Below, one piece after another: positions 5,457 through 24,222 of a DNA stretch of 37,526 nt (positions are counted from its first letter, which is position 1; each line of letters starts with the position of its first letter). The position numbers and the translations under genes are program-made. The DNA comes from Klebsormidium nitens (Eukaryota > Plantae > Klebsormidiophyceae). The notes below the pieces were generated by a model. That model did not search any database and was not told the DNA's origin. It saw only the letters and a program-made list of their open reading frames with translations. The stretch spans positions 1-37,526 of the forward strand of contig DF237695.1 of the NCBI GenBank assembly GCA_000708835.1, written 5' to 3'.

Positions 5457-6413
5457 ACTTCAGGGCTCAACCCGAGGCCCCGGCCGTTCGTTTGCAGTGA
5501 TTTATACGTCATAGCGGACAGATTCAAAAGCAGCGATAGTGCCTGAACGGAACGTTTAAGTGCCAGTGCACCCGGGGTGGAGACAAGCAACAAAAAAAGC
5601 TACATATATATAAATGCAGACTATGCTGACTGAAGGAATTGCGTGCCGGAGAGGTCTCCTCACGAATGCTGCCGGCATGGCTTCTTTCAAGGTAGCCAAT
5701 GTCGTCTTGACCGTATTCTTCTCCATTCACGTCATTTATTGTGAACCTGCATTGAAACAGTCGAGCACGGGCCAACGGTTTCGATCCTGTTGACCTGCAT
5801 GGAGGGCCACGAAATAAAGTCTGCGCCACGAACTGTATCTATTGACGCCAACATGCATCACGGGGAGGTGACCGTCGGCATATGCATGGATGAGGCGCAC
5901 CATCTGCTTGAGCGACACGTGCGCAACAAGATACTACTCGATTGTACGAGTACGCGGCGCCCCGAAATTGGTTATAAAGAGGATTGCTTTTCAGAATCTA
6001 GTCAATGCCCCGTGCTTACATACACATGGCAAGTAACGTCACACAAAACAATATACCTACAAGCGGCTGCAAGCTGGCTGAGATGCACATGCAATTACGC
6101 GTGCATGCTTCAGGCCTCGCATCATAAACGTGACAAGTGATTAGTGCCGGCATCTCAGAGTACGTCAGGCTTACGTAAATCACACGCAATCCTGGGCAAG
6201 TGCAATGTTCTGAATCGCGTGATCTCAGACAACATTCGAGCGAAATTTAGAAAACGGTAAGAGGCCAAGATTATCTTAACGTTCTCGGCAGTACCCTAGT
6301 TGATGGACGTCGCGACCAGCTTCTGTTGCTAACGACGAGAGAACCGATCACAATGTTCGTTAGAGAGAAAACGAGATTAAGCATGGGTTTCAAAAAAACT
6401 TGACGGGCCATAT

Positions 6414-7070
6414 GCATCATGTCAAAACATATGTGCAGTGGTGTACTGAAAGAACTTCGGAAACAAAACCGGCTTCCTGCATGGGGGAGGTGGCTTAATG
6501 ATTGAGTATTCAGAACGGGCTTCGAGGGGGGGGGTGATTCGCCAGCAGAAAACAGCCACCACTAGACATAAACAACCCACCGACCTCCGTTCCCACCCCT
6601 TGGCATGGCAATTTCATCTCGAACCCGCTGCCTGGCCGTATCTCGTGTATGAAAGCGAGAATAACAGCTTGCCAAAAAGCTGCCAAAATGCTGCCAAATG
6701 CAAAGTGCTTTCTAGATACGACTAATTTGTCAATCTCAGTTCGCTGCGGATATTCGGACTTCGTTTCGTTTTCGAAGCCTCTGAAGGATGCTCTTTTGAC
6801 CGAAGAACACCAGCCTTAGTAAGACATAAGGGCTTGGTTCGACCTTGACGTATGGCCAAGATCTGTGGTGTCCAAAAGGCTTCACGTCACCTTGGTTAAA
6901 TCCGGCCTCCCTAGCCCCACCCCCCGTAAGAGTCATAGGGTAAAAAAGCAGAACAGGCTTCCATACCCCCCCAAACGAACCCCAAAATTGCTCAAAATCG
7001 GCCTCCATGGCCCCCTCGAAAACCTGAAAGCCGGTGTTCAGTACACCACTGGAAAAGTGTTTGACACGAT
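6414..7070. mobile_element. MITE-like element (~660 bp) bounded by ~35-bp terminal inverted repeats
   Basis: 6416-6450 and 7037-7070 are inverted repeats (29/35 nt, including a perfect 15-mer ttcagtacaccactg). Interior is non-coding with G/C runs. A TA dinucleotide lies just outside both ends, but the TSD is uncertain. Confidence 0.6.
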
Positions 7071-7229
7071 TAATACGTACCTTCTCAGCTGTTGGCACAT
7101 CGCTGAGTTTTGCAAGCGAACCGCTCGCCTCAAACACATGGGTTGTAGCACGAGAGCTTCACGTTCTGCATATATATAGCTGTCCTCTCTTCAACAGCCT
7201 AACTAGGCAGTCAACAATACGCTACGGAG

Positions 7230-8193
7230 CTAAGCGTCTAAGCCGAGCGTCAAAAGGGCGTCAACTCTTCCCACAGCCTGGCCTTCGGCGAAATGGTCTC
7301 CCGGGAACTGGACCCGGAGACGGCCCCGCGACGAGAAACAGGTCGTTGCCGGCACGTCTGTTGTCCCACTGGATCTGACTTCAAATGAATTGACAACAAG
7401 AAAGTCCCCAAACCAGAGTTGAACGTCGGCGCCTGGGTTCTCGACTCTTGATACCTGGCACAATCCGAAAGACTGAATGGCGACTTTCTCAACATTAAGC
7501 GCCCCGATAATAATCTGACCGCCTGGACTGGTCGCTGGTCCACCCCAAAAACTTTCCCACGCGATCCCGAAAGCGTCACGCAACTTATGAACCGGAAAGA
7601 GTGGCTGAAGCTGCAGCAGGCTGACGTCAGGATCTAGGTTGGGATTCGCCGTGAGGCCCGTCGTGATGTGCTCGTCACGAACCCCCCAGAACACTAGCCG
7701 TCCATGCAGCCAAACAAACGTCAGCATGACGTCACTGCAGCAACAGGAGTCAAAATGAGTGCTGCGGTCCTCTCCACCCCGGGAATCCAGCTCAGCCCGC
7801 TGAATTTGTTCACCCCCGCTGTTTTTGAAACGCCGGAACTGGGTACAAACTGCTTGGAAAACGCGACGCATTAATCTGGTCTCAATCTTTGGCGCACAGT
7901 TTCGTTTCAGTGCTCGATAATACATCATGATTACCAGCTTCCTGTACCCACACAGCTCCTCTACCGTTGCATCTAGCTTTGCACTTTCATCTGGGCAGCA
8001 CTCTTCAAGCACTGCCACCCCTTCCTTTCCATTTGCCGGCCCGCAGAACGCTTCCCTCCAAATGTTGGGGTGCTGGGCGGCCGCGCAATGGACGGGCGCC
8101 TACAGCATACGTGGCGCGTATCAAAGAAGGCGGGTCCTGCCATGCCAGCTTCCGAAGGATGACCAGTATGACGTCAGCGGGAAGCCCCTCCAT
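7230..8193 (-). pseudogene. F-box-like gene A (minus member of pair 1), single +1 frameshift near 8100
   Basis: MEGLPADVILVILRKLAWQDP (8193) shifts frame at GTA-G-GCG (8103-8097) into APVHCAAAQHPNIWREAFCG...ESAKLDATVEELCGY...GRLVFWG, colinear with intact gene B. Confidence 0.85.
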
Positions 8194-8460
8194 GGGTGCT
8201 TTGGGAGAACCGTGCGCCCTTTCAAGCAGGGATTTCAGTAACTCTAAACTTTCAAGCCGGTGCTCGAGCGGGTCTCGAGTCGCTGCGCGGATCGACCGTG
8301 GTCTGAGGGTTTAGAGCACCACGCGCCTCACGCTTGGCCGCGCTCAAGAAACCCCGCGGCCGCGTAAACGGTGTTGCGCCAGAAGTACCCGATGTGCGAA
8401 TTTGACCGCGTGCCACATACTTTATTCAAAGGAATATTTTGGGTGCATATCGCGGCCGCG

Positions 8461-8484
8461 AGCGTACTAAGTACTTAGTACGCT
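8461..8484. repeat. Perfect 24-bp palindrome AGCGTACTAAGTACTTAGTACGCT
   Basis: Seen directly; immediately preceded by the 10-bp palindrome CGCGGCCGCG (8451-8460). Confidence 0.95.
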
Positions 8485-8510
8485 AGAAGAGGGCGGCTAT
8501 ATTGAAGACT

Positions 8511-8712
8511 ATGTCTGGCGACGTTGTCTGATCATCCTGCTTAAATTAGCGGTGCCTGGTCCGAGCGACGTTCGCCCGCGAGTCCTTTGTAGTCACGTCA
8601 GACGGCAGAGGAAGGCTTCGTTCTTTGGGAAGCAACACTGTTTCGTGACCAGACATAGAGCATGGTGATCGTGATGACCCTGGACAAATGTCGTTCCCTT
8701 GGTGGACGTATG
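8511..8712 (+). pseudogene. F-box-like remnant a' (plus member of pair 1)
   Basis: ggc gac gtt gt- ctg atc atc ctg ctt aaa tta gcg gtg = GDVV(fs)LIILLKLAV vs gene C GDVVLFILRKLAV; then KASFFGK (~8612-8632) and SLGG (~8695-8706). Confidence 0.65.
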
Positions 8713-9864
8713 AAAGCGGGGCGAAATTTGATAAATCAGAAAGCTAGCGGCTTTCCCATCGTGTTTAATTTCCGAGTCTTCTTGCTGCAAGAGGAGATAA
8801 AAGGATTCGAAGGAGTAAGGAAGAATAGCTCACGTAGAAATTTTGAAAGGACAGATACTAGCACTTGTGACTTGTACTTGCGATATTGTTATTTTGGAAG
8901 CTTGCTCAACAACACAAAAACGCTAGCCCGTCATCGTTGAAAGCCGGTGGTGAACGCTTCCGCTTGGCGTGTACGATTTCGCCCACTTCCTCAACGGAAA
9001 GCCTCTCTGGCCGTTCACCGAGTTTATCAAGATCACCGTTTGCGTACGATAAATTAGCCTTTTCATTCTTCATTCTTAGGACCTTTCGTTGATTTGGACG
9101 TCAATTCAAGCTAGCATTGCAGCTGCATGATTTTGTGAACCCGAGCGTCCGATTCTGCTTTCTGGCATGTAGTGACTCGTTCATGGTTTTTATAGTATGA
9201 TTACCATGCCCGATATCTGAGAGCTACTTTTATGAAGCATGGAAGACGGAACAAGTATCTGACTTGCTCTTCAGATAGAATCGTTCTTGCTTTCTTTTGG
9301 ACCGCAAGTGGTGAGGATGCTTCCGGCTCTGCCATTCGTATCCTTACCGTTGCCCTAGCCATGCTTATGCTAATGTTTCAATTGGGAGACCAGGTCATAG
9401 ACGACCTGGTTCAAGTTAATTATTATGGGCCGCTCATAAAAGCTCGACATCTTGTGCTCACATCCCTGCTGCGAAGCAGCTAGAGTAGATTACGTAGTAG
9501 GTATGACACCTCCCATACGACTCTGGGCACGTAAATCTTTTTCACTTTATGAACACATATAAAGACTGAGCGAATCCAGAAGAAACGGCGCTGAATCTAC
9601 TAGGCTTCCTAAGTCCAAACAAGGCTTAGAAGAATACCAGTGGCTGAACTATGGCAAATAGTAGCGACACGGAAAGAGGGGCTATGTTTTACATAAGCAA
9701 ACCGTTTACAATGATTGTCAAGGTGCGAACAGAAAGCCTCCAACTTTGCATGAAAATCGTCTTACGGCCCTCAATTCACTCGATCTCGGTTTTGCCCTGG
9801 CGCCGGGACCCGCCACGAGACCGCTTTTGCATTTCTCGTCCTCTTTGAATGCTCTAGACTTTAC

Positions 9865-10821
9865 TTAGGTCAAATATTCCAAGGAGCTGTCTTCGAAACC
9901 AAGCGACAAGCGGGCGGCAACGCCTTGCACAGCAAAACCGTTTCCGCAAATACAAAGCCAGCGCCACGAAACGAAAAAGTGTTCAGCCGTTGCTCTCAAC
10001 GTGCTCTGCTTCACGGATGATTCTTGGAATAGAAAATCTTTGGTACACCAGTAGCGAATATGAGGGCGCGGGTTCTTCTGAAGCTGTACTGGGCACGATT
10101 GAAAGTCGAAGACCTCGGCAATAAGAGCTCCAGGAGGAAAGAAGTGGTCAAGCGAGAATGTGCCAGTGTATTGTCTACTTTCAGACTTTTCCAAAGTGTG
10201 CTTTAAGGCACCGAGAATATGTCGGCCCGGGAAAAGCGGCTGCAGAGGGAGGCGGAAAAGACCACAAATGCGGTGGGCATGGGGCAGCGCGGGATTGTTG
10301 CTATCGCACAGTCCCCAAAATACAAGCCGTCCATCCAGCCAGACCAGAGTCAGCAAGGCTTTGCTGCAACAAAAGGGATCAAACGGAGCGCTGCAGTCGT
10401 GTCCTCCTGAGGAAACCCTCTCGCCGCTTTGCGGTGTTTGTTCAGAAGCGCTGGCCTCGAAATGCTCCAAGCGCGGGGCGCAAACCGCTGGAAAACATTG
10501 GCGTCCTCCGTTATTCTTGAAGACCGGAGCACTCTTCTCCAGCGCCGAGGAATACCGCGCTGTCACCATTACTCTGTATCCGCATAGCTCCTCAACTCTT
10601 GCGTCCAGCTTTGCGCTCTCTTCTGAACAGGGCTCCCCAAGCAATACCCATCCCTTTTCCACTTCCAGACCGTAGAAAGCTTCCTTCCAGACGTTTAGAT
10701 CTTCGGCGGCCGCGCGGTGAAAGGATGCTGAACAAAACGTGGCGCGCAGTAAAGCAAGCGGGTCTTGGGCCGCTAGCTTGTGAAGGATGATCAAAACAAC
10801 GTCAGCAGGGAGGCCCTCCAT
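9865..10821 (-). CDS. Intronless F-box-like protein B (318 aa), minus member of pair 2
   Basis: ATG at 10821, MEGLPADVVLIILHKLAAQDPLALLRAT (F-box-like LP..V...IL..L motif); uninterrupted ORF with family motifs WKEAF, KLD, GRLVFWG, LQP. Confidence 0.85.
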   Translation of the reverse strand: MEGLPADVVLIILHKLAAQDPLALLRATFCSASFHRAAAEDLNVWKEAFYGLEVEKGWVLLGEPCSEESAKLDARVEELCGYRVMVTARYSSALEKSAPVFKNNGGRQCFPAVCAPRLEHFEASASEQTPQSGERVSSGGHDCSAPFDPFCCSKALLTLVWLDGRLVFWGLCDSNNPALPHAHRICGLFRLPLQPLFPGRHILGALKHTLEKSESRQYTGTFSLDHFFPPGALIAEVFDFQSCPVQLQKNPRPHIRYWCTKDFLFQESSVKQSTLRATAEHFFVSWRWLCICGNGFAVQGVAARLSLGFEDSSLEYLT

Positions 10822-11150
10822 GGCAGCTCGGAGAATCGTGCAAATGCCTTCCCTTGGAAACGTGGGGAAGATGTTAGTATTACTGAGGCGCTCTTTCTGA
10901 TGGTCATGCAAGCAGCGCGCCGCTTTGTCCCGGGTCGCAGCCGCTTTCACTGCGCCCGACAGGGTTTCAGGTTTGGAGATCAAAAGCCGCATCCGCGGCC
11001 GCGGTTGCTGGAGCGCAGTCAGTGGCGCCCGGCCCGCGCAATCGCACGCGTCCGCGGCCTGGATCTTGTAGGGCCGCCTTGTGACGTACCAGCTCAGGAG
11101 CTTGGGTTACGTTGAAGGACAAATTCCGCTGAGCAGCACGAAATCGCGGC

Positions 11151-11173
11151 GCGGCCGCGGCCGCCAGACGCTC
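11151..11173 (+). promoter_or_regulatory. Conserved 23-bp upstream element GCGGCCGCGGCCGCCAGACGCTC (copy before gene C)
   Basis: Identical at 11151-11173, 13993-14015 and 16285-16307, 235-285 nt upstream of the ATGs of C, D and E. Confidence 0.55.
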
Positions 11174-11412
11174 AGTCGCTGGCGCCCGCGCGAGCTTCAC
11201 GCCGCCGTGGAATGCAGCCGACCCATCTGGCAATAATTCATCCTCTAGCTTGTAAATGAGCGGGCCAGTTCTGCTCACGCCTGCAAGAAGCGGTCTCAGA
11301 TGCTGAAGCGGTCTTGTAGTTTCCTCAGACCACAGCGATCATTGGCGCTTTACGGAAAAAACAACCCGAAACGCCGCACAGGCGGTCGAGTGAGCACAAG
11401 TAGCTCGTGATA

Positions 11413-12363
11413 ATGGCTCACTGGGCGCGGTCGAGTGGATCTCCTTTCTGCGATCTTCCAGGCGACGTCGTATTGTTCATTCTCCGCAAGCTAGCAGTCA
11501 CCGACCCTTGCTCCTTGCTGCCCGCCACGTGTGTCTGCAGAGCCTTCCTTCAGCAAGTGAAGGACAACCCCGGCATTTGGAAGCAAGCATTCTTTGGCGA
11601 GGAGTCCGCATGTAAAGACCGTTGCAGAGAAGAGCAGATTGAAGATGTGGTGGTGTCTCTTGGTGGGTACGAGACGCTAATAAAGTCTCGCACTTGGGAG
11701 GAGTGCACGGAACGCATGGGATCATGTGAACAAAGCCGAAAGCCTTGGCTGCTTCCGGACGGTTCCGCTCATGCCTTACCGGAAGACAGCTCACGGGAAG
11801 AAGTCTTTCTGAAGGTGACCAAGCATTTGGTGGTCATGAGAGACCGAGGAAGACTGGTTCTTTGGGGCCTTTTAACATCGAACGTCAACCGGTCACATTA
11901 TTATAAGTCACATCACCACAAGTGGGAAACAACAGGGGACTTTGCATGGATGGGGACCTCTCGAAGCGGTCTTCCGGAGCCGCTCATTGGTGTTAGTTTG
12001 AGCACTTCTCGGCTTCAGTCAATCTCTTTTAGCGGCAGTAGCTCAGAGAATTCAAGCGAACTAGGATGGGTGACCAGGTTGACTGAAAGCGGACAAACGG
12101 TGAAGGGGCCAGTGTCTATGGAAATATACCTCTTCCCAGACCGCAGGGCAGACCCGATATGCCCATTCTGCTTACCAATGATACCAGGATCAAGGGCTTG
12201 GCACTGCAGAGTGTTCTCAGATCAGAGCAATAGAATCCCCTTTTTAAAATTGAGAGGTACTTTCGACGTCCTTTATCCCAAGAGAGAAGTGTACACGAAC
12301 CTCAGAAAAGAAAAGTGCGAAAACGCTGGGAAGCTTTTGAAGCGCATATGCACCATCTTGTGA
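11413..12363 (+). CDS. Intronless F-box-like protein C (316 aa), plus member of pair 2
   Basis: MAHW...DLPGDVVLFILRKLAVTDPCSLLPATCVCRAF; intact ORF with WKQAFFG, LGGY, RGRLVLWG, SRLQ, GPVSMEIY; ends CTIL*. Confidence 0.85.
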   Translation: MAHWARSSGSPFCDLPGDVVLFILRKLAVTDPCSLLPATCVCRAFLQQVKDNPGIWKQAFFGEESACKDRCREEQIEDVVVSLGGYETLIKSRTWEECTERMGSCEQSRKPWLLPDGSAHALPEDSSREEVFLKVTKHLVVMRDRGRLVLWGLLTSNVNRSHYYKSHHHKWETTGDFAWMGTSRSGLPEPLIGVSLSTSRLQSISFSGSSSENSSELGWVTRLTESGQTVKGPVSMEIYLFPDRRADPICPFCLPMIPGSRAWHCRVFSDQSNRIPFLKLRGTFDVLYPKREVYTNLRKEKCENAGKLLKRICTIL

Positions 12364-13512
12364 TCCAAAGGCAAGCCGGCGGGCTGAAACAGGTCTGGCA
12401 ATCTTTGAACGGCGCCCTGATCCTTGTACGTGCCCGTAGACGAAACGTAAAGGCAGCTTGTGAAACGATGGTTTGTGGCACAACCAGTTTGCCAGTGCAC
12501 CGCTGCCGCTGCCCTGGTACAAGTAAGACTTGTTTGTTATACTATTTGTGTAGAGAAACTTGACCTGGACAAGATATCAGTGCTAGAGTTTCCTAAATAT
12601 CAGATTGATAGTGTTCACAAAACTGGTTTCTGCATGTCTTTTCTTAGAGAATCAATCATGCAGATAATGAACCGTTGATTGCGTTCGGGCGCGCGCTGCT
12701 CGACAATTCGATGATGCTTTCGTATGTTGCATGGATACAGCACACACGTGTCAACGTACTCGTCCCAAACGAGATTGTAGCAGGTCGTGAAGACTCACGT
12801 TCCTATATCCATTAATACATGTCACCACGTTTGCAAATTAACGAGACTGCTTGCTACACCGCGACTGGATCGAGCCGCTCTTGGATAACGGTCGCGCTGG
12901 TGCATGCCTATTGCACTAAGTAGAAAGACAAGGGAAGTCTAAGGCTGGGACATCCTCCGAGACTCAAGTAAACTAAGCGAGCGCTTGGATGAAGCAGTCT
13001 CCTGACCATATTCCGACTTTAGCGTACTGCGAGCGTGCCGCTGCCATGTACGTATCTCGTTTTACTTCAAGTTTGATAGCAGGCGATTAAAACGTAACCT
13101 GCAACAGTTGCCAACTTTTTTCGTCGATCGCTGTAGTGATCTCCTGTGGCACTCGAAGAAACTTAGATGCCCGAGAGTAATTTTGTATGGTTCAGATCAA
13201 CCGGAGAGGTGAATACAAGACAACGCAATAAGCGACTAGAGTAATGTCCAAGTAGCCCATTACGATAGCGGCCGCCGTTCGTGCCTGGTGCACGTCACAG
13301 GCGTGCATTTGTGCAACTACGTGGGTTGCAACAAGCAAATGAAACTGCCGACGAGCTGCAGAACTGCTACTTTCAAGACTGCGATCGCCATCAAGTAATT
13401 GTTACCTGATGGTTGACGACAATGATCAAACCAAGTTACTACTCGTTATCTCGTCGATATATGCGTCAGCTTCCAAGGTGCCCAGAACAAACTAGAGAAG
13501 ACCAACGTACGC

Positions 13513-13649
13513 TAGTAAGTCGGGATGTTCTGCCACCGTGCGGTACAAGGGCGCCAAATCACAGGTGCTTCGTGGGAAAGAGAGAGGGCGTCCAGAGCAG
13601 CCAGCTCTTGCAAATTTATCGGGATCAAGCCGCCCGAAAGGCGCTTTAT
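13513..13649 (-). pseudogene. F-box-like remnant d' (minus member of pair 3); ATG replaced by ATA
   Basis: IKRLSGGLIPINLQELAALDALSL, frameshift, then STCDLAPLYRTVAEHPDL vs gene F MDRLPSELILIILHKLAALDPLSLLQSTCAWAPFYRVAAANPHL. Confidence 0.8.
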
Positions 13650-13992
13650 GCCTGCGCTGAGAGTGGCTAGGCGGGTTGAATCCCCAGCACGGCCGCGCGC
13701 GGATTCGACCCGGCGCGGGCGGCTGCGGGGCTCAATGCGCGGCGTGGCCGCGCCGGTTCGCGGGGAGTGCCGAGACGGAGGCTGCCGCGGCTGGTCTTGG
13801 ACGCGGCCGCTGCAGTGCCCCCGGGGCCGAGTCGGCGCGCGCTGGAATATATGTAGCGCGCGCCGCCGCGTGGAGGCGCGTCAGTCGGCATCATGGCATG
13901 ACGCGCGACCCAAACCGTCTGTGATCGTACGTACGTCCGACCACAAAGCGCCTCCGGTGCATGAAACAAGGGTTTGAAGACCCACATGAACC

Positions 13993-14015
13993 GCGGCCGC
14001 GGCCGCCAGACGCTC
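13993..14015 (+). promoter_or_regulatory. Conserved 23-bp upstream element (copy before gene D)
   Basis: Identical to 11151-11173 and 16285-16307. Confidence 0.55.
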
Positions 14016-14227
14016 AGTCACCGGTGCCGTCGCGCCGCCTTGGATTACCTTGAGCAAGCCAGCATGCAGTACATTGTTCGCATGGCGCGCCAGCTCTGCT
14101 GACGCCTGCGAAATTCCCTTATCTCGAGCGGACCTGTCTCTTGAGCTGGACTCTAGCAGGTTTTGGCGCTTTCAGTTTAGCAAGAAAGAGAACCCACCTT
14201 GAGATACGGAAAGAGCTGGATCTGATA

Positions 14228-15151
14228 ATGGCCCACAGGGCGGCGTACTGTAACTCTTCTATAAGCGACCTTCCAGGCGAAGTTCACTTGAGTATTCTCC
14301 GCAAGCTAGCGGTCCTTGACCCATGCTCATTGCTGCCTGCCACGTGGGCCTGCAGAGCCTTCCGTCAGCAAGTGAAGGACAACCCTGATATCTGGAAGCA
14401 AGCCTTCTTTGGCGGGGACCCCATGTTTGAAGACCGTTCGAGAGAGGTGGAGATTGAAAATGTAGTGGTGTCGCTTGGTGGCTACGGGAGGCTCGTAAAG
14501 GCCCGCACTTGGGGGGAGTGCCCGGAACGCATGGGGTTGGCACGTGAACAAACCCAGAGACCTAATTTGTTGCCAAGGGACGAGTCTGCTCATACCTCAC
14601 CGGGAAACAGCCCAGGAAAGGACTTTTATAAAGTGACCAAGCGTTTGGTGGTAATGAGACACCAAGGAAGACTAGTTCTTTGGGGCCTTTTGATATCGCA
14701 CATCAGGAGCTCGAGGCGGCGACCCGATTTTTGGGGCGAGAGGGGCGACTTTTCATGGGGGCGAACGTCTGGGGGCTTTGGATACCCGGATCCTCACAAA
14801 GGTGTGAGCCTGGGAACTCATAGCCTTCAGCCAGTTCGTTGTAGCGGCAGTGGTTCAGATAAATCTGCAAGCAGACCAGGACGTGTGGAGTTCTCCGTAA
14901 GCGGACGCACCTTGACTGGACCAGTCTCTGTGGAGATGTATCTCTTGCTAGACCGGGCTGCAGAACCATTCCCGTTCTGGTCACCAATCAACCGCGGAGC
15001 AAGGGCTTGGAAGTGCAAAATAGTTTCCTTTAAGAGTCCTAAGATTCCCGCCTTTCGCTTGAGGTGCAGATCCCACGTCGTCGTGCCTGAGACAGACGAG
15101 TGTATCAGGGCTTGCAAACAGAGTCCGAAGCGTTTCTGCACTATCTTGTGA
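14228..15151 (+). CDS. Intronless F-box-like protein D (307 aa), plus member of pair 3
   Basis: MAHR...DLPGEVHLSILRKLAVLDPCSLLPAT; intact paralog of C; ends CTIL*. Confidence 0.85.
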   Translation: MAHRAAYCNSSISDLPGEVHLSILRKLAVLDPCSLLPATWACRAFRQQVKDNPDIWKQAFFGGDPMFEDRSREVEIENVVVSLGGYGRLVKARTWGECPERMGLAREQTQRPNLLPRDESAHTSPGNSPGKDFYKVTKRLVVMRHQGRLVLWGLLISHIRSSRRRPDFWGERGDFSWGRTSGGFGYPDPHKGVSLGTHSLQPVRCSGSGSDKSASRPGRVEFSVSGRTLTGPVSVEMYLLLDRAAEPFPFWSPINRGARAWKCKIVSFKSPKIPAFRLRCRSHVVVPETDECIRACKQSPKRFCTIL

Positions 15152-15340
15152 TCAAGGAAGGAGCTTGAGCCGCTCGATCAGCTTTAAGTGGTACTCTGAT
15201 AAGAACACAGCGTCTCGCTTCTCAGAATCCTTTAAGGACTAGAATAGACAAAGTATACCTTGTGTTATAGCTGCGGCCAAATTTCGGTAGTGCACCGCTT
15301 GTGTCGAACTTCTTTCTCGTTCCTTCTAGGGTCAGAGAAG

Positions 15341-15925
15341 GTCGGCCCGGGCAAGAGTCGATTGCATGAATCCTGCCAAGTCGTCAAGGCTCAGAAACAT
15401 TTTGATTTGACATCAGAGCTCGTTCTGGGCCTTTTTTTGAGTTAGAGGACAACCATAGTGGAAATAGGTTGTTTATTTGCTCCGTTCAGGCGCGCGTTGC
15501 TGGACATAATGTATGTGTTCCTGGACACTCTTAAATACATCGGACCGTATGGCATGCATACTTATATACTATATATACGGCCAGTCGCGAGTCGACCACG
15601 CCCGCGAGTCGAGAGGCCAACTTAATCTGCGCCCCGCACTTGTGAGGCACTTGTGCCCTGTAGACGTATATGCACACGCCTGACAAGCCCTCGCTATTAT
15701 TGTAGGTAAGAAGCCCAGCAACATAACAAAAACCCTTGTCTTTCGAAGCTTCCATAATTACAACAAGGCAGCCGGCCGATCTAAGTCTAGCCGCTCGCCC
15801 GGCTTATAACTGTTTCGATTCTCGTAACTGTGCCCATTCTTCACACCTGTGCTCGCTCAAAACACGCTTCTTAGTAACGAGAGGTGGTCCAGAGCCGCCA
15901 GCTCGCAAAGGATGACCAAGAGCAA
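15341..15925 (-). pseudogene. Decayed F-box-like gene e' (minus member of pair 4), start deleted
   Basis: LLLVILCELAALDHLSLLRS at 15925-15866 vs gene F LILIILHKLAALDPLSLLQS. The 11-mer gtcggcccggg at 15341 matches gene B 10221 (PGR motif) at colinear spacing (584 vs 579 nt). Confidence 0.7.
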
Positions 15926-16284
15926 TCCGGCCGCCTGCGCTGACTTAGCGCAGCCCCAATCCGACGCGGCGGGCGCGTGCAACCGTGCGCGGCCGCGGTT
16001 CATGTGGGCCGCGCCCGTCAGATTAAAGCGGCCCCCTATTCAGTCGGCGCACAGCACCGCGCGCGGCTTTCGTCCCTGTGCATCAATCCACCGAAGCCGC
16101 CACAAGACACGGCCGCGCCTGGGTTGCCCAACGCGGCGGCAACGCGGACCTCGTTTGAGCGGCCGCGGGCTGCGCTTTAAAGACGCGGGGCGAGAATCCG
16201 TTGAATGGCATTTTGCGCCAGCCGCCGGCCAGCCTGACCGAGTGGGCAGGACAACTGTCAGGGTTTTAAGATTTGAACCGCAAC

Positions 16285-16307
16285 GCGGCCGCGGCCGCCA
16301 GACGCTC
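16285..16307 (+). promoter_or_regulatory. Conserved 23-bp upstream element (copy before gene E)
   Basis: Identical to the copies before C and D. Confidence 0.55.
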
Positions 16308-16569
16308 GGCCACTGGCGCCCGCGCAGCCGTCACGCGGCCTTGGTCATGAAGCAACATGCTTCGCCAGAACATTAGAATACGTTCACAATCACTTGTCAC
16401 ACCTCGCATGGGCACTCCGGCACTCTGCCGGCAGATCCCTTCACCCAGGAAGAAGCGGTCTCAATCTCTCACGCGGACTTGGTTTGAACTTAGCGATGTG
16501 GAGTCTTGGCGCTTAACGGCTGAAGAACAAAAGCCCAAAGGTGACGCGACATCTCTGCGCTCGAGGATA

Positions 16570-17492
16570 ATGGCCCACAGGGCGCCAGCGCATGCAACTT
16601 CTTTGAGCGATCTTCCAGGCGAAAATCACATCATTCTCCGCAAGCTAGCTCTCCTCAACCCTTGCTCCTTGCTGCCTGCCACGTGTGCAAGTAGAGCCTT
16701 TCGTCAGCAAGTGAAAGAAGACCCTGATGTCTGGAAGCTTGCCTTCTTTGGCAAGGAGTCGAGGCTTGAAGACTGTTGTAAAGAAGAGGAGATTACAGAT
16801 GCGGTCAATTCTCTTGGTGGGTTTGAGATGCTTGTGAAGGTTCGCACTTGGGAGGAATGCCCGGAACGCATGGGGTTGGCATGTGAACAAATCCGGCGAT
16901 CTGGGCTGCTATGGGGCGGTTACCGGAAGACAGCTCGCCGGAAATGTATCCCGGAGTGACCAAGTATTTGGTAGTGATAAGAGACCGAGCTTGAGGGGAA
17001 CTTCTCCTATGCGGTCTCCGAGTCCTTACAGTCACTGTCAACGGACCGGATTTGCTGCACGATAAGGGCGACTTGAAGCTTCGGGTAGCCTCTCACATCA
17101 AAGATCCACCGCACTGCACCGAGTTCCGTTTGAAAACATCTCGGCTCCAACCAAGCGGACCAGTCTCCATGGAGATGTACATCTTCCCAAAGAGCATAAC
17201 AGCACCACGACCGTTCGGACTAACAACCAGAGGGAAACTAAGAGTCACAACTTTGTACTGGAAGTGCAAACTTTTCTTTGGGGGTACTGGTTTTGCATCT
17301 TTGTTCAGCGACAATTACTACGTCGTGTATCCAGAGACGGGAGAGGACACGAACCGTTCTGCGTTTTCGACGCACTCATGCGCCATCTTGTCATCCAAAA
17401 GCGAACCACCATCAGTGCGGTCGTCTCATGTTCGACTCCGGCCAGAACCCTTTCCTAGCTTTGCTGACATTACGCTGGAAAGACTACCGTAG
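16570..17492 (+). pseudogene. F-box-like gene E (plus member of pair 4), frameshift plus nonsense
   Basis: Paralog of C/D. A ~13-nt deletion at ~16920 relative to C shifts the frame. The new frame reads LPEDSSPEMYPGVTKYLVVIRDRA*GELLLCGL...SRLQPSGPVSMEMYIF. Confidence 0.85.
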
Positions 17493-18534
17493 TCTGCATA
17501 TGTTCTCGTTCAAAACATCTCAGCAAAGTACAGATGATCCATAGGCAGAGTTGGAATCAAGTCAGAAACCTGCTGACCAGAGAAACAATCGACTTCATAT
17601 GGATTTCAAAGGTGCGTGTCCTGTAGGAACCTCAAGCGCAGTCGTCTTTATACCACGCGCGCTGCGGAATGTGTTTGATTTGCTGGCTAGCATGCGTTTC
17701 GTAAGGACCGACGAGAATTGCATAAGTGTCCGCACGAAGATGCTCCATGTTGATGTATTCAACACGTACGCCCAGCAAGTTGTCGGACTACGTCACCGGG
17801 CTTGTACCAGTCTGATCAGTGACGTACTTCCAAGCGGAGGTTTTCAGCACTTGTCAGACTGGACGATAAGTCTGCTTGCTGCAAAAGGGATGTGAATTTT
17901 ACGCGAGCAGATGGGCCGCTTGCCGCTTGCCCTGAATAAGAAAGATGACGTACTTGATGAGGACGAGCCTTTTTCAGGACTTCATGAGAATGTGACAATT
18001 CAGCGCCAAGCCTGGGCTTTCACCGTGCAGAGTTATTTTATGGCTGCGCAGCGCGCTACTTCGAGCGGCCGCCTGGCCGTTGCTGGGAATCATTGCGATC
18101 CACAGCAACATGATATCGATGTACATATATTGTTCATCAGATGCTCAAACAGTTGCAGTTAGTAGATTCCCTGCTTCAAAAAGTTCAGACCGGTATGCAG
18201 AGCATGATACTCAAGGTGTTTGACGGTTGAATGCAGTCTTCCAAACATCCATCCGTGCTTCGATGTGCCCAGATTGAAGTCCAACTGAAGTCTAGGTTAC
18301 AATCGAGAGACTTCAAAGGATTTCCGGTTAACATGGACTGCTCTCATGTCTTAATTACAAATTGTTTAGAAAGTGGATCCTCACTCGACGAGTTGGCAAA
18401 AATAGAAACAGACAAAATCTAAATTTGTCTCGTTCCTGGCCGATGTCCTATTCAAAAACATGGTTTTTGAGGGTCATATTGTGTCCTCGGTGTAAGAACG
18501 AACTCTTGATTTTCCGATGCCCTCTTCAGATAGC

Positions 18535-19440
18535 TTATGTCCCATTGCTGGGCTCCGGCCCCTCTTCCCAACAAATCCTCCAAATGGGCTCAGTCGCGTT
18601 AAACTTTATCTTCAAATACGAAAACACGTCACACATCGAATCCTCGTGATGCGGGTTTGACTCACGACTCAAAAAGCCGCGCAAGGATAACCATCTCCAC
18701 ATTTCGTAATCCACCCAACCATGACGTTCCGGGGAAAATGTGCCCCAGCAGACACCACTCGGTGGTCCTTTCAAAGCGGGTGCCCCTGTCTCACAGGGTG
18801 AAAAACTGTAGACCTCGACGGAAACGGGACCAGTCTCAGGAGTATCGAGACGGCCAATCTGGACGGTCCGCGTTTGGCATATTTCGCTCAGTACTGCGTC
18901 GGAATGTATGGACCACAACTGCTGGAGCCGAACGCCCCAAGAATCCTCCCCTAGAACCGCTGGGTACAATTTTGCACTGAGATCATATGGGATCTTGTCA
19001 TGGGGGTAGATGCCCCACATCCAAATACTTCCCCGTACGCGAACAAGGGTCATGATTACCCCACCGGACCAAAGCCGCGCCACGAAGCAGCGACTAGCGC
19101 GTTCATGATCGAGGTCGGAAATGGAGCCTCCAACCTTTTGGCTTTGTTCAGCACGCTTGCTGTTCCGTGCCGCACAAAAACGTGCTGTCAACAGTCGTTT
19201 GTATCCTCCTAACGCTACAACCGCTGCATCCAGCTTTTCGACCCGTTCTAGCTGTTGATATTGTTCAGACTGTTTCCCGCTTGCCGGTCCACAAAAGGCT
19301 TCTTTCCAAAGGTGTGGATTCGCTGCCGCCACGCGGTAGAAGGGCGCCCACGCACAAGTACTTTGCAGTAACGAGAGGGGGTCCAGAGCCGCCAGCTTGT
19401 GAAGGATGATCAGGATCAACTCACTCGGAAGGCGGTCCAT
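18535..19440 (-). CDS. Intronless F-box-like protein F (301 aa), minus member of pair 5
   Basis: MDRLPSELILIILHKLAALDPLSLLQSTCAW; intact ORF with WKEAF, KLDAAVVALGGY, LQQ, GPVSVEVY. Confidence 0.85.
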   Translation of the reverse strand: MDRLPSELILIILHKLAALDPLSLLQSTCAWAPFYRVAAANPHLWKEAFCGPASGKQSEQYQQLERVEKLDAAVVALGGYKRLLTARFCAARNSKRAEQSQKVGGSISDLDHERASRCFVARLWSGGVIMTLVRVRGSIWMWGIYPHDKIPYDLSAKLYPAVLGEDSWGVRLQQLWSIHSDAVLSEICQTRTVQIGRLDTPETGPVSVEVYSFSPCETGAPALKGPPSGVCWGTFSPERHGWVDYEMWRWLSLRGFLSRESNPHHEDSMCDVFSYLKIKFNATEPIWRICWEEGPEPSNGT

Positions 19441-19827
19441 GCCTCTGCGCTAAGAATCTGAAAATTGGCTGAATACTACTAGACCGGCCGCCTGCTGAGT
19501 TGGTCGAACCGGCGCGGCGCGGCGGCCGCGCTGGCCTCAGTGCGCCGCTTCGTTTTGGCGCGGCAGGGGGTCCACGGACGCTGCCGCCGCTGGTTTTAGG
19601 CGCGGCCGTCACAGCGGCTCCCTTCCGGGCCCGCGCAGTGGCGCGCGCGGCGGCGCGCGCAGCCTGCCGCAGCCATGTGGCGTTGTGCCCAGGCGCCTTG
19701 ATTTTCGCTCGGAGGGTTTAGCAGAACCGCCCGCGCGGCCACGTTCGTAAGCCGCCGCGTCAGGATGATAGCGACCGAGGCCTAGCTTCTCTCCCACGAG
19801 ACGGTTCTTGAATTTGGAGGAAAGGCG

Positions 19828-20636
19828 ATGGAGCCACTTCCAGGCGACATTGTTACTCTGATCCTCCGCAAGCTGGCCGCTCAGAACCCAGTCTCTTTGT
19901 TGAACGCCACGTGCGCATTGGCGAGCTTTCACTGCGCCGCTTCACCGGACCCAGACATCTGGAAGGAGGCCTTCTTTGATGAGAAAGAAAGGGTTTCGGT
20001 TGAAGTCTTTAGCGCGCGAGATTCTGCCAAGTTGGACTCAGAGGCCGCAGCTCTGGGCAGGTACAGACGTTCGATGGTTGCAAAACATGGCGATAGACTT
20101 CCTTGCAGTGGCAGATCTGCACGGAATCACAAGGCTCAGCGTCTCAATCTACCACTTTGCTGCAAGTTCCATCTTGAGGTCAACAAATTTCAGAACGGAG
20201 TTCTTTTTCCCTACAGGAGACTTGTCTTTGTTGCGACTTGCAATATTTTTGTTTATCCCCCTTGAAGAGCTGTCAGAACGTAGTCGTTGTCGGCAGATCT
20301 AGCTACTAGTAGTTCCCCTGCACCAGAGCTTCCGTTTTGGATTCAGACGTTACTCCTAGGCAAAAAGTGCAGAGAAAGTCAAGCAGAACCCCTTTCTAAA
20401 AAGGAGCTATCTCACGGGTTGCAACGTACGGACCCTCCCTGAAACTTCTTCATTGCAAAGGGGTAGAACATAGATTAGCCAGTTAGAAGGAGAACTAGAA
20501 CGTTTGAAGCAACCCAATATTTGGCAAGATTCTTGGACCTCAGGTTTACTCCAAGAGATTCAACAGCTTTTGGTCGCGATGATTCGTGACATTGCCACCT
20601 CATGCTGGACCTTCATATAGTATGGAAACGTACAGC
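19828..20636 (+). pseudogene. F-box-like gene G (plus member of pair 5); ORF stops at 20265 (145 aa), decayed tail beyond
   Basis: MEPLPGDIVTLILRKLAAQNP...WKEAFF...SAKLD...RRLVF; out-of-frame remnant GPSYSMETYS at 20607-20636 matches the GPVSMEIY motif. Confidence 0.75.
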
Positions 20637-21477
20637 GATCAACGAACCTGATTGCATACAACTTGTAGTACGGTCGGCTTTGGAACGGAAAGCTTAGACT
20701 GCTCCTGAGATTGCTATGATGGCCGACCCGCCTGTGACGGCAATGCAACGTCTGAACCAAGAAAATCTTATCGGAGACAGACATGCGTTTTCAGCACTTT
20801 AGATCTCCTACTAGCCGGATGGTGCCTTGCACACGGACGGCCGGAATCCTTTAGATGCACCGTCTCATGCCATTTATATCCTGGCCCGGATCTTGCCAAA
20901 CCTTTTCGTCCATTAACCCAAACACACCGCTTTTTGCGGTACTTTGTAAAGGCTTTTGCAAGACGCCATTATTTAACAATCCACCACCTGCTCCGGCTAA
21001 AGCAAACCTGAGACAGTCCAGACGAGGCCTTGCATGTGTCAAACAATGCAGAAAGGAGGAGGAGATAGAAGTCCGCCATTGTCGTAACTTGGTGGAAGCC
21101 ATGACCAGAACCCAAAAAGCGTACACAAAATCTCTGTCGAAACCGTCCGATGGAAGTTCAGCGGGGCTTCTGCGACCGTTGGATCGAAAAGTCCTGGAAA
21201 AATGCGGGCCAGGATATAAACAGCATGAGCGTCAACGGTCTCGGCCTAAGTTATCCAGCGGTTGAAAGCACCAGATTAACCAGATGTCTCGCCCGCCTGG
21301 TCTATAGTAGTTGGCACTTGCAACTCGGAGTCAATCCTTCGCAATGAATGTTTTGAAGTACGTTCCATTGGCCAGCCAGTGCTGGTAGCAAGCCTTTTCT
21401 GCCTTTTTGTGCAAAGCACCAAAGCACCAAAGCACCGAAAGGCGACAGCGAACTTCCTGAAGGATGAAGCTTGTGAA

Positions 21478-21544
21478 GCAGCTTGTGAACCTCTTGTGAA
21501 AGATATTAGGTAAAGAGGAAGTCACCCGGAAGGCGCTTGATCAT
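21478..21544 (-). pseudogene. F-box-like remnant h' (minus member of pair 6)
   Basis: MIKRLPGDFLFT* then out-of-frame IFHK; upstream sequence (ccggccgcctg at 21575) matches that of gene F (19484). Confidence 0.65.
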
Positions 21545-21954
21545 GCTGCGGCTAAGCTGAATTGCTATATAAAACCGGCCGCCTGACGAGCTGTGAGGCC
21601 GATTCCAGCGCGCCGAAGCGGCGCGGCGCGGCCGCGAGGCTCTGGCAGTGCGCCGCTTCATTTGGCGCGGAAGAGGGTACGTCCAATCTAAGGACGCGGC
21701 CGCGGCTGGTTTCAGGCGCGGCCTGGCACAGCGCCCCATTTTCCCGGTCCTCACATTGGCGCGCGCGGCGGCGCGCGCAGCGTGTTATGCCCAGGCGCGT
21801 CACTGGTCGAAGGGTTTAACAAAACCGCCCGCGCGGCCACATTTGTAAGCGGCCGCGTCAGAGCGTCAGGATGAGAGCGACATTCGTATGGCTGTTTTCT
21901 CCCAAATCAACTACTACTGGTACCAGGTACTCTAGGACCAGAGGAGATAAGGCG

Positions 21955-22696
21955 ATGGAGCGACTTCCAGGGGAGCTTCTCCTTATTATTCTCCGCAAGC
22001 TGGCCGCCCAAGACCCGGCCTCCTTGGTGACGGCCACCAGCACAGTGGCGAGCTTTCACCGCGCCATAGCAAAGAATCCGATCATCTGGAAGGAGGCACT
22101 CTTGAATGAGGAGGAAGATTCATCGCTTGATCACTGGACTGCGGAACAGTCTGCTCGGTTGGACGCACAAGCGGCCTTTCTAGCTGGCGGGTACAGGCGT
22201 TTGGTGGTGGCACAAAATGTCCCCCAGCTTTCGTGCAGCAGATCTGAGTCGGAGAATCACTACGAGGCTCAGCTGGATCCACCATTCTGTTGCAGAATCC
22301 ATTTCAACGAGAGGTATCGCCTTATGTTCGCCTTCAATAGCTATATATTTGACATGCTGCGCTTCTCTACTAGCTAATGAAACCCCGGAGGGCCGTGCTG
22401 TCGGAGTGTAGTCTTTATATGGTTGGCCGCTAAACCCCACCACCCTGCATCGACAGAATTCCATTCTTGAATCAGACGCTCTCTGCAGGGAGAAGCCCCA
22501 AGAGGAAGTCAAGCAAAAGCTTTTTTTAAACAAGAGCTATCCAGCTGGTTGAGAAGTGATTAGCCTCAATAATAGAATTTAGAATCCGTATTGTATGGTT
22601 ATACGCAGGCCTCAAGCTGACTCCAGGAGATGCTTCTATCTTTGGGCGCCTCAATTTGCGACGGAGCCACCTCATGCTGGCCCCGCAATGGAGATA
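21955..22696 (+). pseudogene. F-box-like gene H (plus member of pair 6); ORF stops at 22377 (140 aa), decayed tail beyond
   Basis: MERLPGELLLIILRKLAAQDP...WKEALL...SARLD..GGY; remnant GPAMEI at 22679-22696. The ~21520-22700 segment is a diverged duplicate of ~19420-20640. Confidence 0.75.
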
Positions 22697-22740
22697 CCAG
22701 CGAATTCTGCTCGGTTGTGAGAAGTCGATTGACGCCGCAA

Positions 22741-22803
22741 AGCTTAGCTTGCTCTTTCCATAGCTTAGCTTGCTCTTTCCATAGCTTAGCTTGCTCTTTC
22801 CAT
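22741..22803 (+). repeat. Perfect 3 x 21-bp tandem repeat (AGCTTAGCTTGCTCTTTCCAT)
   Basis: Three contiguous identical units, no spacers. Confidence 0.95.
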
Positions 22804-24222
22804 ATTGGCTATCGGAGAAGAATATACTGGACAAGTTGGATCTGTCCGTCTCTCACAGGGAGTATCAGACCAGTGAAATGGTACAGTGGGGATCTTCATC
22901 TTAGTCGCATTCAGTGAGTGGAGTTCCCGTGGAGTTACTGCGAGTGCATTGGGCGAGAGACTCCTCGAGGTCTAGTCTGAGCTTGCTCTCGTCCGACTGG
23001 TACTGCTCAATGTCTTCTGACTGGCTGTCATTCAAACGGGCTAGCTGGGAATATGACTCCACACTGACAAACCATGCATGGCTTTTCTTGCGCATGTACA
23101 TAAATCGAAAAGTGTTTTTCATGCAAGACTTCCGCGGGTATCAGGAGAACGTTGTTGCAGTTTAGCTCATATATTTTATCATAAAGATGGAAAGCTAGAA
23201 GCATAACTCACAAGAAAGTGCCGCGCCTAAGCTCTTGTAGCTTGCTGACGGTCAGGTTCACTTCTTCAAAATGGTCTGCCCATTGCTGATCGAGTGTACG
23301 TTCAGGGGAATCGCGGCGGGTAAATCTGGTCTATCCTGAATATTCGTCAACCGGATAATACTGATGACCCAGCTATATATTGAACAGAACCGACGTGCCC
23401 AACTTAGGTGCATCAATCATGATCGAGCAATTGGACATTAATGTCCAATCACTTATTATCAAGTGGCGGGTCGGTACATGGTCACTAATGACCATATACC
23501 ATACCGTGGCAGCAGGGTGCATGCTTATGTTTTCATTTGAAAGCGGCGGCGCTAGCTCGCGATCGGACACACTTTCTATCTCATGCCCGCTAGCTGGGTC
23601 CATGAAAGTCGGATCGAATGAATCAAGCAAGACCGCATCGTGCAGACCGGTCGGAATGATCCTGTTGACCGTCTAAGACGTACAAAAGATCGAAGACATG
23701 GGACAATGTGCCAGACAATCCATTCATCTTGGCGAGTGAATCTCGTAAAACCTAAAAGCTCTAATCTAGCGTGCTCAGTTTACCGGCCTTCATTTGAAGG
23801 TGTGTGTCCGTCACATAGCATTAAGTGTTCGGGCCTATCTAATCTACTCGCGTCATCTTCGATGGCCGGCTGACATAATGTTTCCAAGTATCCGAGTCCA
23901 AGCAATTCCGTTGGATCCGCCATACAGCATTGCACCCCGGTACTTCGATTACACTCTGGGACGGTCCTATGAACACATAGACTGCGAAGCACTTGAGATG
24001 GGCCAAAACTGTCGATATTCAGCTGTCAAGCTGAGCGGCATAATGTGAAGCATCTTAGAAGAGGAGCTCGTACATGCGACGCTTTCCGCTTCGAATTTAA
24101 GCTTGGAGCAATGCGCTCATCTGCTTTCCCCCACCTGCCTTCGTCTCCCATTCAATCAGCAAATCCATATCTCTAATTTGGCTGCAGCATTCAACTGCGG
24201 ATCTCCTTCGCCGTGTCCTGGA

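Follow-up and report, generated by a model that had tools for sequence, protein, structure and literature searches.

About 15 kb of the genome of the streptophyte alga Klebsormidium nitens, at 7.2-22.7 kb of contig DF237695.1 (assembly GCA_000708835.1), holds twelve related F-box gene starts laid out in six back-to-back, divergent pairs. We analysed this array within the whole stretch of 37,526 nucleotides from that contig (positions 1 to 37,526, forward strand; hereafter the window), which is eukaryotic and has a GC content of ~52%. The explanation that we favour, with a probability of roughly 0.7, is that the locus is a birth-and-death tandem array, built by overlapping local duplications within a lineage-expanded F-box family of a Klebsormidium-type streptophyte alga. 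On this reading, the locus is a birth-and-death array of a common sort, tidy in its layout, and not a new kind of system, and most of its copies are broken, as is usual for fast-evolving gene families.

Eight paralogous genes were identified by tblastn and protein hidden Markov models (HMMs), with A, B and F on the minus strand and C, D, E, G and H on the plus strand. When a DNA profile built from the opening 165 nt of these genes was run with nhmmer over both strands of the whole window, it returned exactly 12 matches at E<0.01, comprising the eight genes and four 5′ remnants that we call a', d', e' and h'; the next match had an E value of 0.09. The first-pass annotation had described six divergent pairs around GC islands, had counted the four remnants as real and had held the minus and plus members to be homologous to each other. 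All three claims were borne out: the twelve loci lie on the strands and at the places it gave (pairs A/a', B/C, d'/D, e'/E, F/G and h'/H), and the homology between minus and plus members was recovered by sequence comparison. Start-to-start distances across the six pairs range from 309 to 623 bp. The six islands between the starts have a GC content of 0.555-0.677, compared with 0.45-0.49 in the spacers, and an observed/expected CpG ratio of 1.16-1.35. The eight genes are listed below, together with the evidence for each (HSP, high-scoring segment pair; AF2, AlphaFold2; pLDDT, predicted local distance difference test).

A, 7233..8193, minus strand: Q type, full length, with a frameshift near 8100; tblastn and HMM matches in two frames.
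B, 9865..10821 (tblastn/HMM match 10821..9868), minus strand: intact Q type, 318 aa from the ATG at 10821.
C, 11413..12363, plus strand: intact C type, 316 aa; Pfam PF12937 at 24.3 bits; AF2 model with pLDDT 71.
D, 14228..15151, plus strand: intact C type, 307 aa; Pfam PF12937 at 26.4 bits.
E, 16570..17492, plus strand: C type, frameshifted near 16920, its C-terminal half decayed; HSPs from tblastn fall in two frames.
F, 18535..19440 (tblastn/HMM match 19440..18538), minus strand: intact L type, 301 aa; tblastn and HMM matches.
G, 19828..20265, plus strand: Q-like, with an open frame of 145 aa and without the C-terminal domain.
H, 21955..22377, plus strand: Q-like, with an open frame of 140 aa from the ATG at 21955 and without the C-terminal domain.

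The identity matrix and the trees divide the twelve loci into three types: Q (A, B, G and H, which share the residues A-A-Q-D-P, S-A-K-L-D and F-C-C), L (F, d', e' and h') and C (C, D, E and a'). From left to right, the pairs are therefore Q/C, Q/C, L/C, L/C, L/Q and L/Q. Four copies are intact (B, C, D and F), two are frameshifted (A and E), two are truncated (G and H) and four are relics. A and E are probable pseudogenes. In both, the overlapping HSPs lie in different frames without a gap, so the frame change is not an intron; E also retains a weak C-terminal HMM match at 17124-17192. No C-terminal domain was found for G and H with the C-terminal HMM on six-frame fragments. Synonymous divergence (dS) is 0.5-0.8 among C, D and E and between G and H, and ~1.6 for A and B. 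The ratio of nonsynonymous to synonymous divergence (dN/dS) is 0.3-0.6 across the compared pairs (C-D: dS 0.69, dN/dS 0.48; G-H: dS 0.80, dN/dS 0.58), and the coding sequences were therefore under relaxed purifying selection.

The F-box identity of the family is seen in both motif and predicted fold. All eight genes share an N-terminal pattern (M-E/D-x-L-P-x-D-V..I-L-x-K-L-A-x-x-D-P-x-S-L-L..A-T-C, then N-P-x-I-W-K-E-A-F-x-G, then a helix with L-G-G-Y-x-x-L), which in the aligned full-length members is followed by a beta-rich C-terminal half. The Pfam PF12937 cut-off of 24.3 bits was equalled by C and exceeded by D, with B, F, H and E below it; at E<=0.01 the same Pfam model also matched 25 of the 40 members scanned (best 9.3e-9), and K. 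nitens members carry the UniRef label 'F-box domain-containing protein'. We modelled C with AF2 from an alignment of 96 sequences (pLDDT 71, predicted template-modelling score (pTM) 0.72); an earlier model from 9 sequences had a pLDDT of 41 and was not used for searches. Residues 11-100 of the C model are helical, with a pLDDT of ~90. In VIA-align, residues 8-94 superposed on many Skp1-bound F-boxes, the best-fitting of which gave Z scores of 3.4-4.8 and root-mean-square deviations (rmsd) of 1.6-2.4 Å over ~40-48 residues (Skp2 1fs1_C, Z 4.5, rmsd 1.8 Å over 41 residues; Fbl10, Z 4.8, rmsd 1.6 Å over 40 residues). FBXL5, FBXL17, FBXO31, FBXO3, Cdc4, Fbw7 and beta-TrCP1 were also among the top 50. 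These Z scores are low because the domain has only ~40 residues, and the weight lies in the recurrence of such complexes in the list. The ESM Atlas neighbours were F-box clusters as well. Together, these results indicate that the N-terminal region has an F-box motif and, as modelled, the three-helix F-box fold.

The N-terminal F-box presumably docks on SKP1 in an SCF ubiquitin ligase, and the beta-rich C-terminal domain is presumably the substrate-binding part. In C, this domain spans residues 134-287, with pLDDT values of ~55-89 in 10-residue blocks. We found no Pfam family besides F-box in the 40 members and no PDB sequence match to the family profile. The C model had no Foldseek match in the PDB at E<=0.001, and the VIA-align rows covered residues 8-94 alone. 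The predicted C-terminal domain, modelled only in full-length C, thus did not fall into a known class (LRR, WD40, Kelch, FBA or others), and we do not claim it as a new fold.

The four remnants each consist of ~48-135 nt of 5′ coding sequence:

a', 8502..8632 (nhmmer 8515-8632), plus strand: decayed 5′ piece of a C-type gene, E 1.2e-3.
d', 13517..13649, minus strand: 5′ piece of an L-type (F-like) gene, with the start codon changed to ATA and one frameshift, E 1.1e-13.
e', 15868..15946 (nhmmer 15926-15868), minus strand: short 5′ piece of an L-type gene, E 1.1e-7.
h', 21493..21544 (nhmmer 21540-21493), minus strand: ~48-nt 5′ piece of an L-type gene with the start codon lost, E 6.3e-3.

The remnant a' reads M-S-G-D-V-V, then has a one-base frameshift followed by LIILLKLAVPGPS (residues L-I-I-L-L-K-L-A-V-P-G-P-S) and later K-A-S-F-F-G. 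The remnant d' and its adjoining island align with the 5′ end of F and its upstream sequence over 342 nt in blastn (E 2e-33; 13523-13842 against 19316-19648). For e', identity with F is 87% over 53 nt, and the protein HMM gave an E value of 0.016. The remnant h' lies at the extreme left of an unbroken 1.1-kb alignment between the G and H regions (E 1e-90; 19396-20421 against 21493-22551) and was probably never a complete gene. As a null, we shuffled the window 200 times in 500-nt blocks with dinucleotides kept; the best shuffled score was 9.8, compared with 10.5 for h' and 12.8 for a'. Neither tblastn nor the C-terminal HMM on six-frame fragments detected gene bodies for a', d', e' or h' beyond chance. 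One candidate body remnant at 12308-12460 (E 0.045) was rejected, as its alignment was unconvincing. Tandem repeats of 8 nt and 12 nt lie at 21412-21441 and 21468-21500, to the left of and across the end of h', and the repeat at 21468-21500 is built on the F-box codons GCTTGTGAAG.

We compared the six islands with one another by profiles. Mononucleotide shuffles inflated the z-scores of short GC motifs in these comparisons, and the critical ones were redone with dinucleotide shuffles. Three classes of module were recognized: an L-module, an R-module and a G/H-specific module. They are distributed as follows:

Island 1 (A/a'), 8194..8501 (8194-8514 in the palindrome count): GC 0.555, two GCGGCCGC sites.
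Island 2 (B/C), 10822..11412: B-side part 10822-11141 and R-module 11142-11412, GC 0.60.
Island 3 (d'/D), 13650..14227: mosaic of L-module 13652-13842, ~140 nt of unmatched sequence and R-module 13985-14227.
Island 4 (e'/E), 15947..16569: partial L-module 15948-16067, unmatched middle and R-module 16276-16569.
Island 5 (F/G), 19441..19827: L-module 19441-19648 and G/H module 19652-19827, GC 0.677.
Island 6 (h'/H), 21545..21954: L-module and G/H module, a copy of island 5.

The modules follow the genes. The L-module adjoins d', F and h' (at 21553-21765 for h'), and its partial copy beside e' scores 24, a value reached by 0 of 300 dinucleotide shuffles. The R-module adjoins C, D and E (E 3e-66 for the nhmmer R-module profile). 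Judged from sequence, each island is made of two gene-specific upstream modules, non-homologous to each other and set back to back. The halves show no inverted symmetry. The islands of the six units do not form one homologous set, and no relatives were detected for island 1 or for the B side of island 2.

The islands share a short palindrome, GCGGCCGC. It occurs 24 times in the window against 0.85 expected, and the six islands together contain 16 copies, where dinucleotide shuffles of their own sequence predict 0.69. At least one copy is present in every island, including the mutually non-homologous modules, and 6 of the 16 island copies belong to a conserved doubled site that opens the R-module. 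Copies also lie within coding sequence at 3827, 3840 and 5397. This palindrome could be a promoter element or a recombination hotspot. The islands are putative bidirectional promoters, for which the analysis covered the spacing of the starts, the GC and CpG richness and the GCGGCCGC enrichment.

Self-comparison of the window by blastn gave colinear alignments between A and B at an offset of 2629 (66.5% DNA identity across 541 nt), between C and D (11150-12293 against 13992-15104), and between d'/D and e'/E at offsets of 2291-2342. In addition, the 5′ end of F, its island and G align with h', its island and H as one stretch. Next to the match between A and B, a' corresponds to the C type. Colinear homology between neighbouring units thus includes non-coding sequence, as seen in both the blastn self-comparison and the module profiles. 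This supports part of the proposal that the pairs duplicated as pairs, in that neighbouring units are colinear across an island and parts of both genes; strict co-duplication of pairs was rejected by the trees.

We built a DNA tree from the 12 F-box segments (163 columns). It grouped a' with C, D and E (support 94/96), G with H (88/95), F with e' (85/92) and F with d', e' and h' (58/93). Strict co-duplication of pairs predicts a clade of B, d' and e' that mirrors C, D and E. Enforcing this clade was worse by a delta lnL of 18.7 and was rejected by the approximately unbiased (AU) test (p-AU 0.015), and hence the pairs were not always copied together. The protein tree joined A and B with G and H at 97/95. 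A split between minus and plus genes had a support of 29/0 in the DNA tree, and the AU test on proteins gave p 0.197 for monophyly of the minus genes.

A full HMM search placed these genes in a larger family, for which it found 172 cluster representatives at E<=1e-3; at E<=1e-10 the number was 143. We looked up 25 representatives: 21 were unnamed sequences from Logan assemblies, one was an unnamed sequence from ENA and three were named, all of them K. nitens hypothetical or F-box proteins (GAQ92358.1, GAQ91656.1 and GAQ85612.1). A metagenome scan with the C-type alignment found no relative. In a family tree of 158 rows, a quick tree with weak deep nodes, A grouped with P0012, B with P0028 (97*; a protein of another assembly, 65% identical to B) and F with seven L-type proteins including P0004, P0005 and P0007 (98*), and C, D and E fell among five C-type proteins. 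G and H were joined in this family tree and in the protein tree as well. The C type sits in a different large clade from A/B, F and G/H, with many lineages from outside the window in between. The partners within each pair are therefore distant family members, and an inverted duplication, if it founded the pairing, was ancient.

Several of the relatives outside the window were each reported with one contig. A contig size of 10379 nt is shared by the C-type protein P0003 and the L-type proteins P0004, P0039, P0150 and P0138; a size of 7422 nt by the C-type P0002 and the L-types P0007 and P0127; and a size of 8550 nt by the C-type P0006 and the B-like P0028. If equal size means the same contig, the Q/C and L/C combinations apparently recur in another genome. 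One of the three named K. nitens relatives, P0010 (GAQ85612.1), has two consecutive F-box-plus-helix modules within a single protein of 338 aa. The protein may have a genuine internal duplication, or the gene model may have fused two tandem genes of the same strand. The intact proteins B, C, D and F did not themselves turn up in a word search of 5.8 billion proteins, though NCBI holds K. nitens members of the family; their genes may be unannotated in the public proteome.

These data can be accounted for by at least three overlapping rounds of local segmental duplication, each of 2.1-3.4 kb. The probable mechanism is unequal crossing-over, its breakpoints falling within the islands or close to them. 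First, a divergent Q(-)/C(+) pair would have been copied long ago, yielding A|a' and B|C. A unit of one C-type and one L-type gene would then have been triplicated into (C..d'), (D..e') and (E..F), with the joins between units inside the island at the start of the R-module, where the doubled GCGGCCGC lies. The core has exactly three C-type loci (C, D and E) and three L-type loci (d', e' and F). Read as (C..d'), (D..e') and (E..F), the units are convergent; since the phase of a tandem array is arbitrary, a divergent reading is equally valid, with the pairs d'|D and e'|E and, at the two ends, C and F as half units. In a third round, the first ~45 nt of F, the island, G and the 3′ flank would have been duplicated with a period of ~2.1 kb to give h'|H. 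Later decay would have frameshifted A and E, truncated G and H and reduced a', d', e' and h' to 48-135 nt. The strand alternation that results would leave every gene start facing another across a GC- and CpG-rich island of 0.3-0.6 kb.

We weighed this account against four other explanations. It is hardly credible that the remnants are chance matches in GC-rich DNA and that the array is simply eight genes in mixed orientation. The E values of a' and h' are modest (1e-3 and 6e-3) and their protein-level matches are not significant, but none of the 200 composition-matched shuffles reached the score of either, all four remnants lie on the predicted strand ~0.3-0.6 kb from the start of the partner, h' is followed by a clear L-module, and the high significance of d' and e' refutes the idea for these two. 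The history proposed in the first-pass annotation, in which a minus/plus cassette arose by one inverted duplication about a bidirectional promoter and was then amplified six times, predicts one lineage of minus genes and one of plus genes, with mirrored histories. It is quite unlikely, even though all twelve loci fall into six divergent pairs, the best DNA tree parts the six minus segments from the six plus segments, minus-gene monophyly is compatible with the AU test on proteins, and two congruent classes, A|a' together with B|C and F|G together with h'|H, account for four of the six pairs. The support for the minus/plus split is 29/0, the protein tree unites A and B with G and H across it, and the mirrored clade is rejected. 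Moreover, there are three pair compositions, and the islands are mosaics without inverted symmetry between their halves: d' and e' carry F-type sequence and module, and D and E carry C-type sequence and module. The many lineages between the C type and the L and Q types are a further point against a six-fold cassette.

A possible alternative, which we nevertheless consider unlikely, is that single genes were duplicated: each plus gene would have been copied with an upstream segment reaching into its minus neighbour, so that d', e' and h' were never complete and no two-gene unit existed. In agreement with this, the ~48 nt of h' are exactly the left end of the G-to-H alignment, and d' (~133 nt) exceeds e' (~60-80 nt) in length, which is what copying of e' from a portion of d' would give. 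Partial copying of d' and e' is also favoured by the substitutions that they share against F and by the lack of body remnants despite 5′ pieces that are still 67-87% identical to F. By contrast, the three C-type and three L-type core loci are what a triplicated two-gene unit predicts, and in another assembly several longer L-type genes (P0004, P0007, P0039, and P0150 with P0138) apparently share contigs with C-type genes; both points favour d' and e' as deleted, once-complete genes. In addition, e' is nearer to F than to d', and the asymmetry does not hold throughout, given that at a' the remnant lies on the plus strand and the full-length neighbour on the minus strand. The chance is small that the partners are functional pairs, selected together and co-expressed from a shared bidirectional promoter in a sensor/helper or toxin/antidote-like manner. 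The apparent recurrence of Q/C and L/C co-residence on contigs of another assembly, the enrichment of GCGGCCGC in every island and the constraint on the coding sequences (dN/dS <1) fit such pairing. However, both partners are intact only in B|C, the other five pairs having a broken or stub partner (truncated G in F|G, a relic in the other four); partner types are interchangeable (Q/C, L/C and L/Q); and GCGGCCGC also occurs in coding regions elsewhere in the window. We give a similarly small chance to a broader version, hinted at by the apparent same-type co-residence on another assembly's contigs, in which a C type head-to-head with an L or Q type would be a conserved, family-wide Klebsormidium architecture whose pairs are co-regulated from GCGGCCGC islands and selected as functional pairs.

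Several observations weigh against the birth-and-death account that we prefer, or against details of it. Tree resolution is poor, with 163 columns of which e' and h' fill <40%, and a single very old inverted pair may be the ultimate ancestor, the trees neither establishing nor rejecting the minus/plus split. The identity of e' is 87% over 53 nt with F, against 62% with d', so rate differences or gene conversion are needed. Outside the G/H blocks, comparison of the spacers of different units revealed no homology, and the boundaries of the duplications on the 3′ side therefore cannot be fixed. The two L-type remnants of the core, d' and e', are known from 5′ pieces, with no bodies detected by tblastn or the C-terminal HMM, and may never have been complete genes. 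The frame changes in A and E may stem from mistakes in the assembly, and co-residence in other assemblies is read from equal contig sizes.

Other features lie in and around the array. Just beyond the 3′ end of A, at 6402-7084, is a ~680-bp segment with imperfect inverted repeats (6402-6450 against 7084-7037, 75%), the ends of which also match positions 657-801 (66-85%); it looks like a dispersed repeat or an element similar to a miniature inverted-repeat transposable element (MITE) that borders the array on its left. Inverted arms of 45-50 nt with 82% identity (20864-20912 and 21180-21229) lie in the G-h' spacer and enclose ~270 bp. This segment (20864-21229) may be a small inserted element, with no obvious target-site duplication. 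Downstream of H, at 22741-22804, a 21-nt unit is repeated in three perfect tandem copies. Upstream of the array, 1326-4190 contains plant-type leucine-rich-repeat open reading frames (Pfam LRR_1, LRR_8 and LRR_4). Rfam and tRNA scans of the whole window gave no matches, nor did a Pfam search with nine open reading frames from spacers and islands.

The array at 7.2-22.7 kb, on which a literature search found no paper, is of moderate interest for its algal setting, its C-terminal domain without matches and its island palindrome. It suggests that a streptophyte alga near the land-plant lineage already has a large, fast-turnover F-box family in tandem arrays, a mode that is well known from flowering plants and nematodes. 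It also illustrates neatly how a regular-looking 'cassette' array, together with short 5′ relics of neighbouring genes, may result from segmental duplications that overlap and break in putative promoter islands. In practical terms, it yields four intact genes for SKP1-binding tests, a beta-rich candidate substrate domain and a candidate palindromic island motif, GCGGCCGC.

The closest parallels are the tandem, lineage-specific F-box arrays of land plants and nematodes, in which the FBX superfamily evolves by birth and death, or 'genomic drift'. As in those arrays, a large and fast-diverging family has grown by local tandem duplication, intact, frameshifted and truncated genes are mixed with short relics, and a conserved F-box is joined to a variable C-terminal half under relaxed purifying selection (dN/dS 0.3-0.6). 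The Klebsormidium array differs in its algal host, in a C-terminal domain that matched no Pfam family or solved fold, in the regular alternation of strands with all starts facing and in duplicated units that hold parts of two genes. Head-to-head paired NLR (nucleotide-binding leucine-rich-repeat) immune receptor genes, which form sensor/helper pairs, resemble it in having two related divergent genes with a short shared upstream region in a duplicating cluster. They are unlike it in that five of the six pairs here have a broken partner, partner types are swapped and the protein family is another one. The first-pass annotation had suggested paired NLRs, S-locus F-box clusters and nematode antidotes as analogies; with both genes intact in one of six pairs (B/C), these find no support here.

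Divergent gene pairs with bidirectional CpG-rich promoters (PMC2670823, PMC3403606) share with the array starts <1 kb apart and GC- and CpG-rich islands, to which the array adds a palindrome in every island. The array is distinct in that the partners are paralogues of one family and in that the islands consist of two non-homologous, gene-specific modules and not of one shared symmetric element. In dimorphic Mucorales, duplicated head-to-head paralogous loci have had their promoters swapped, and promoter function was shown by exchange (PMC12957363); the head-to-head partners there belong to different, functionally linked families (PMC12957363). The Klebsormidium pairs, by contrast, draw both genes from one family and have islands of putative promoter function. 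What they have in common with the Mucorales loci (PMC12957363) is that two genes lying head-to-head were duplicated along with the upstream region that they share.

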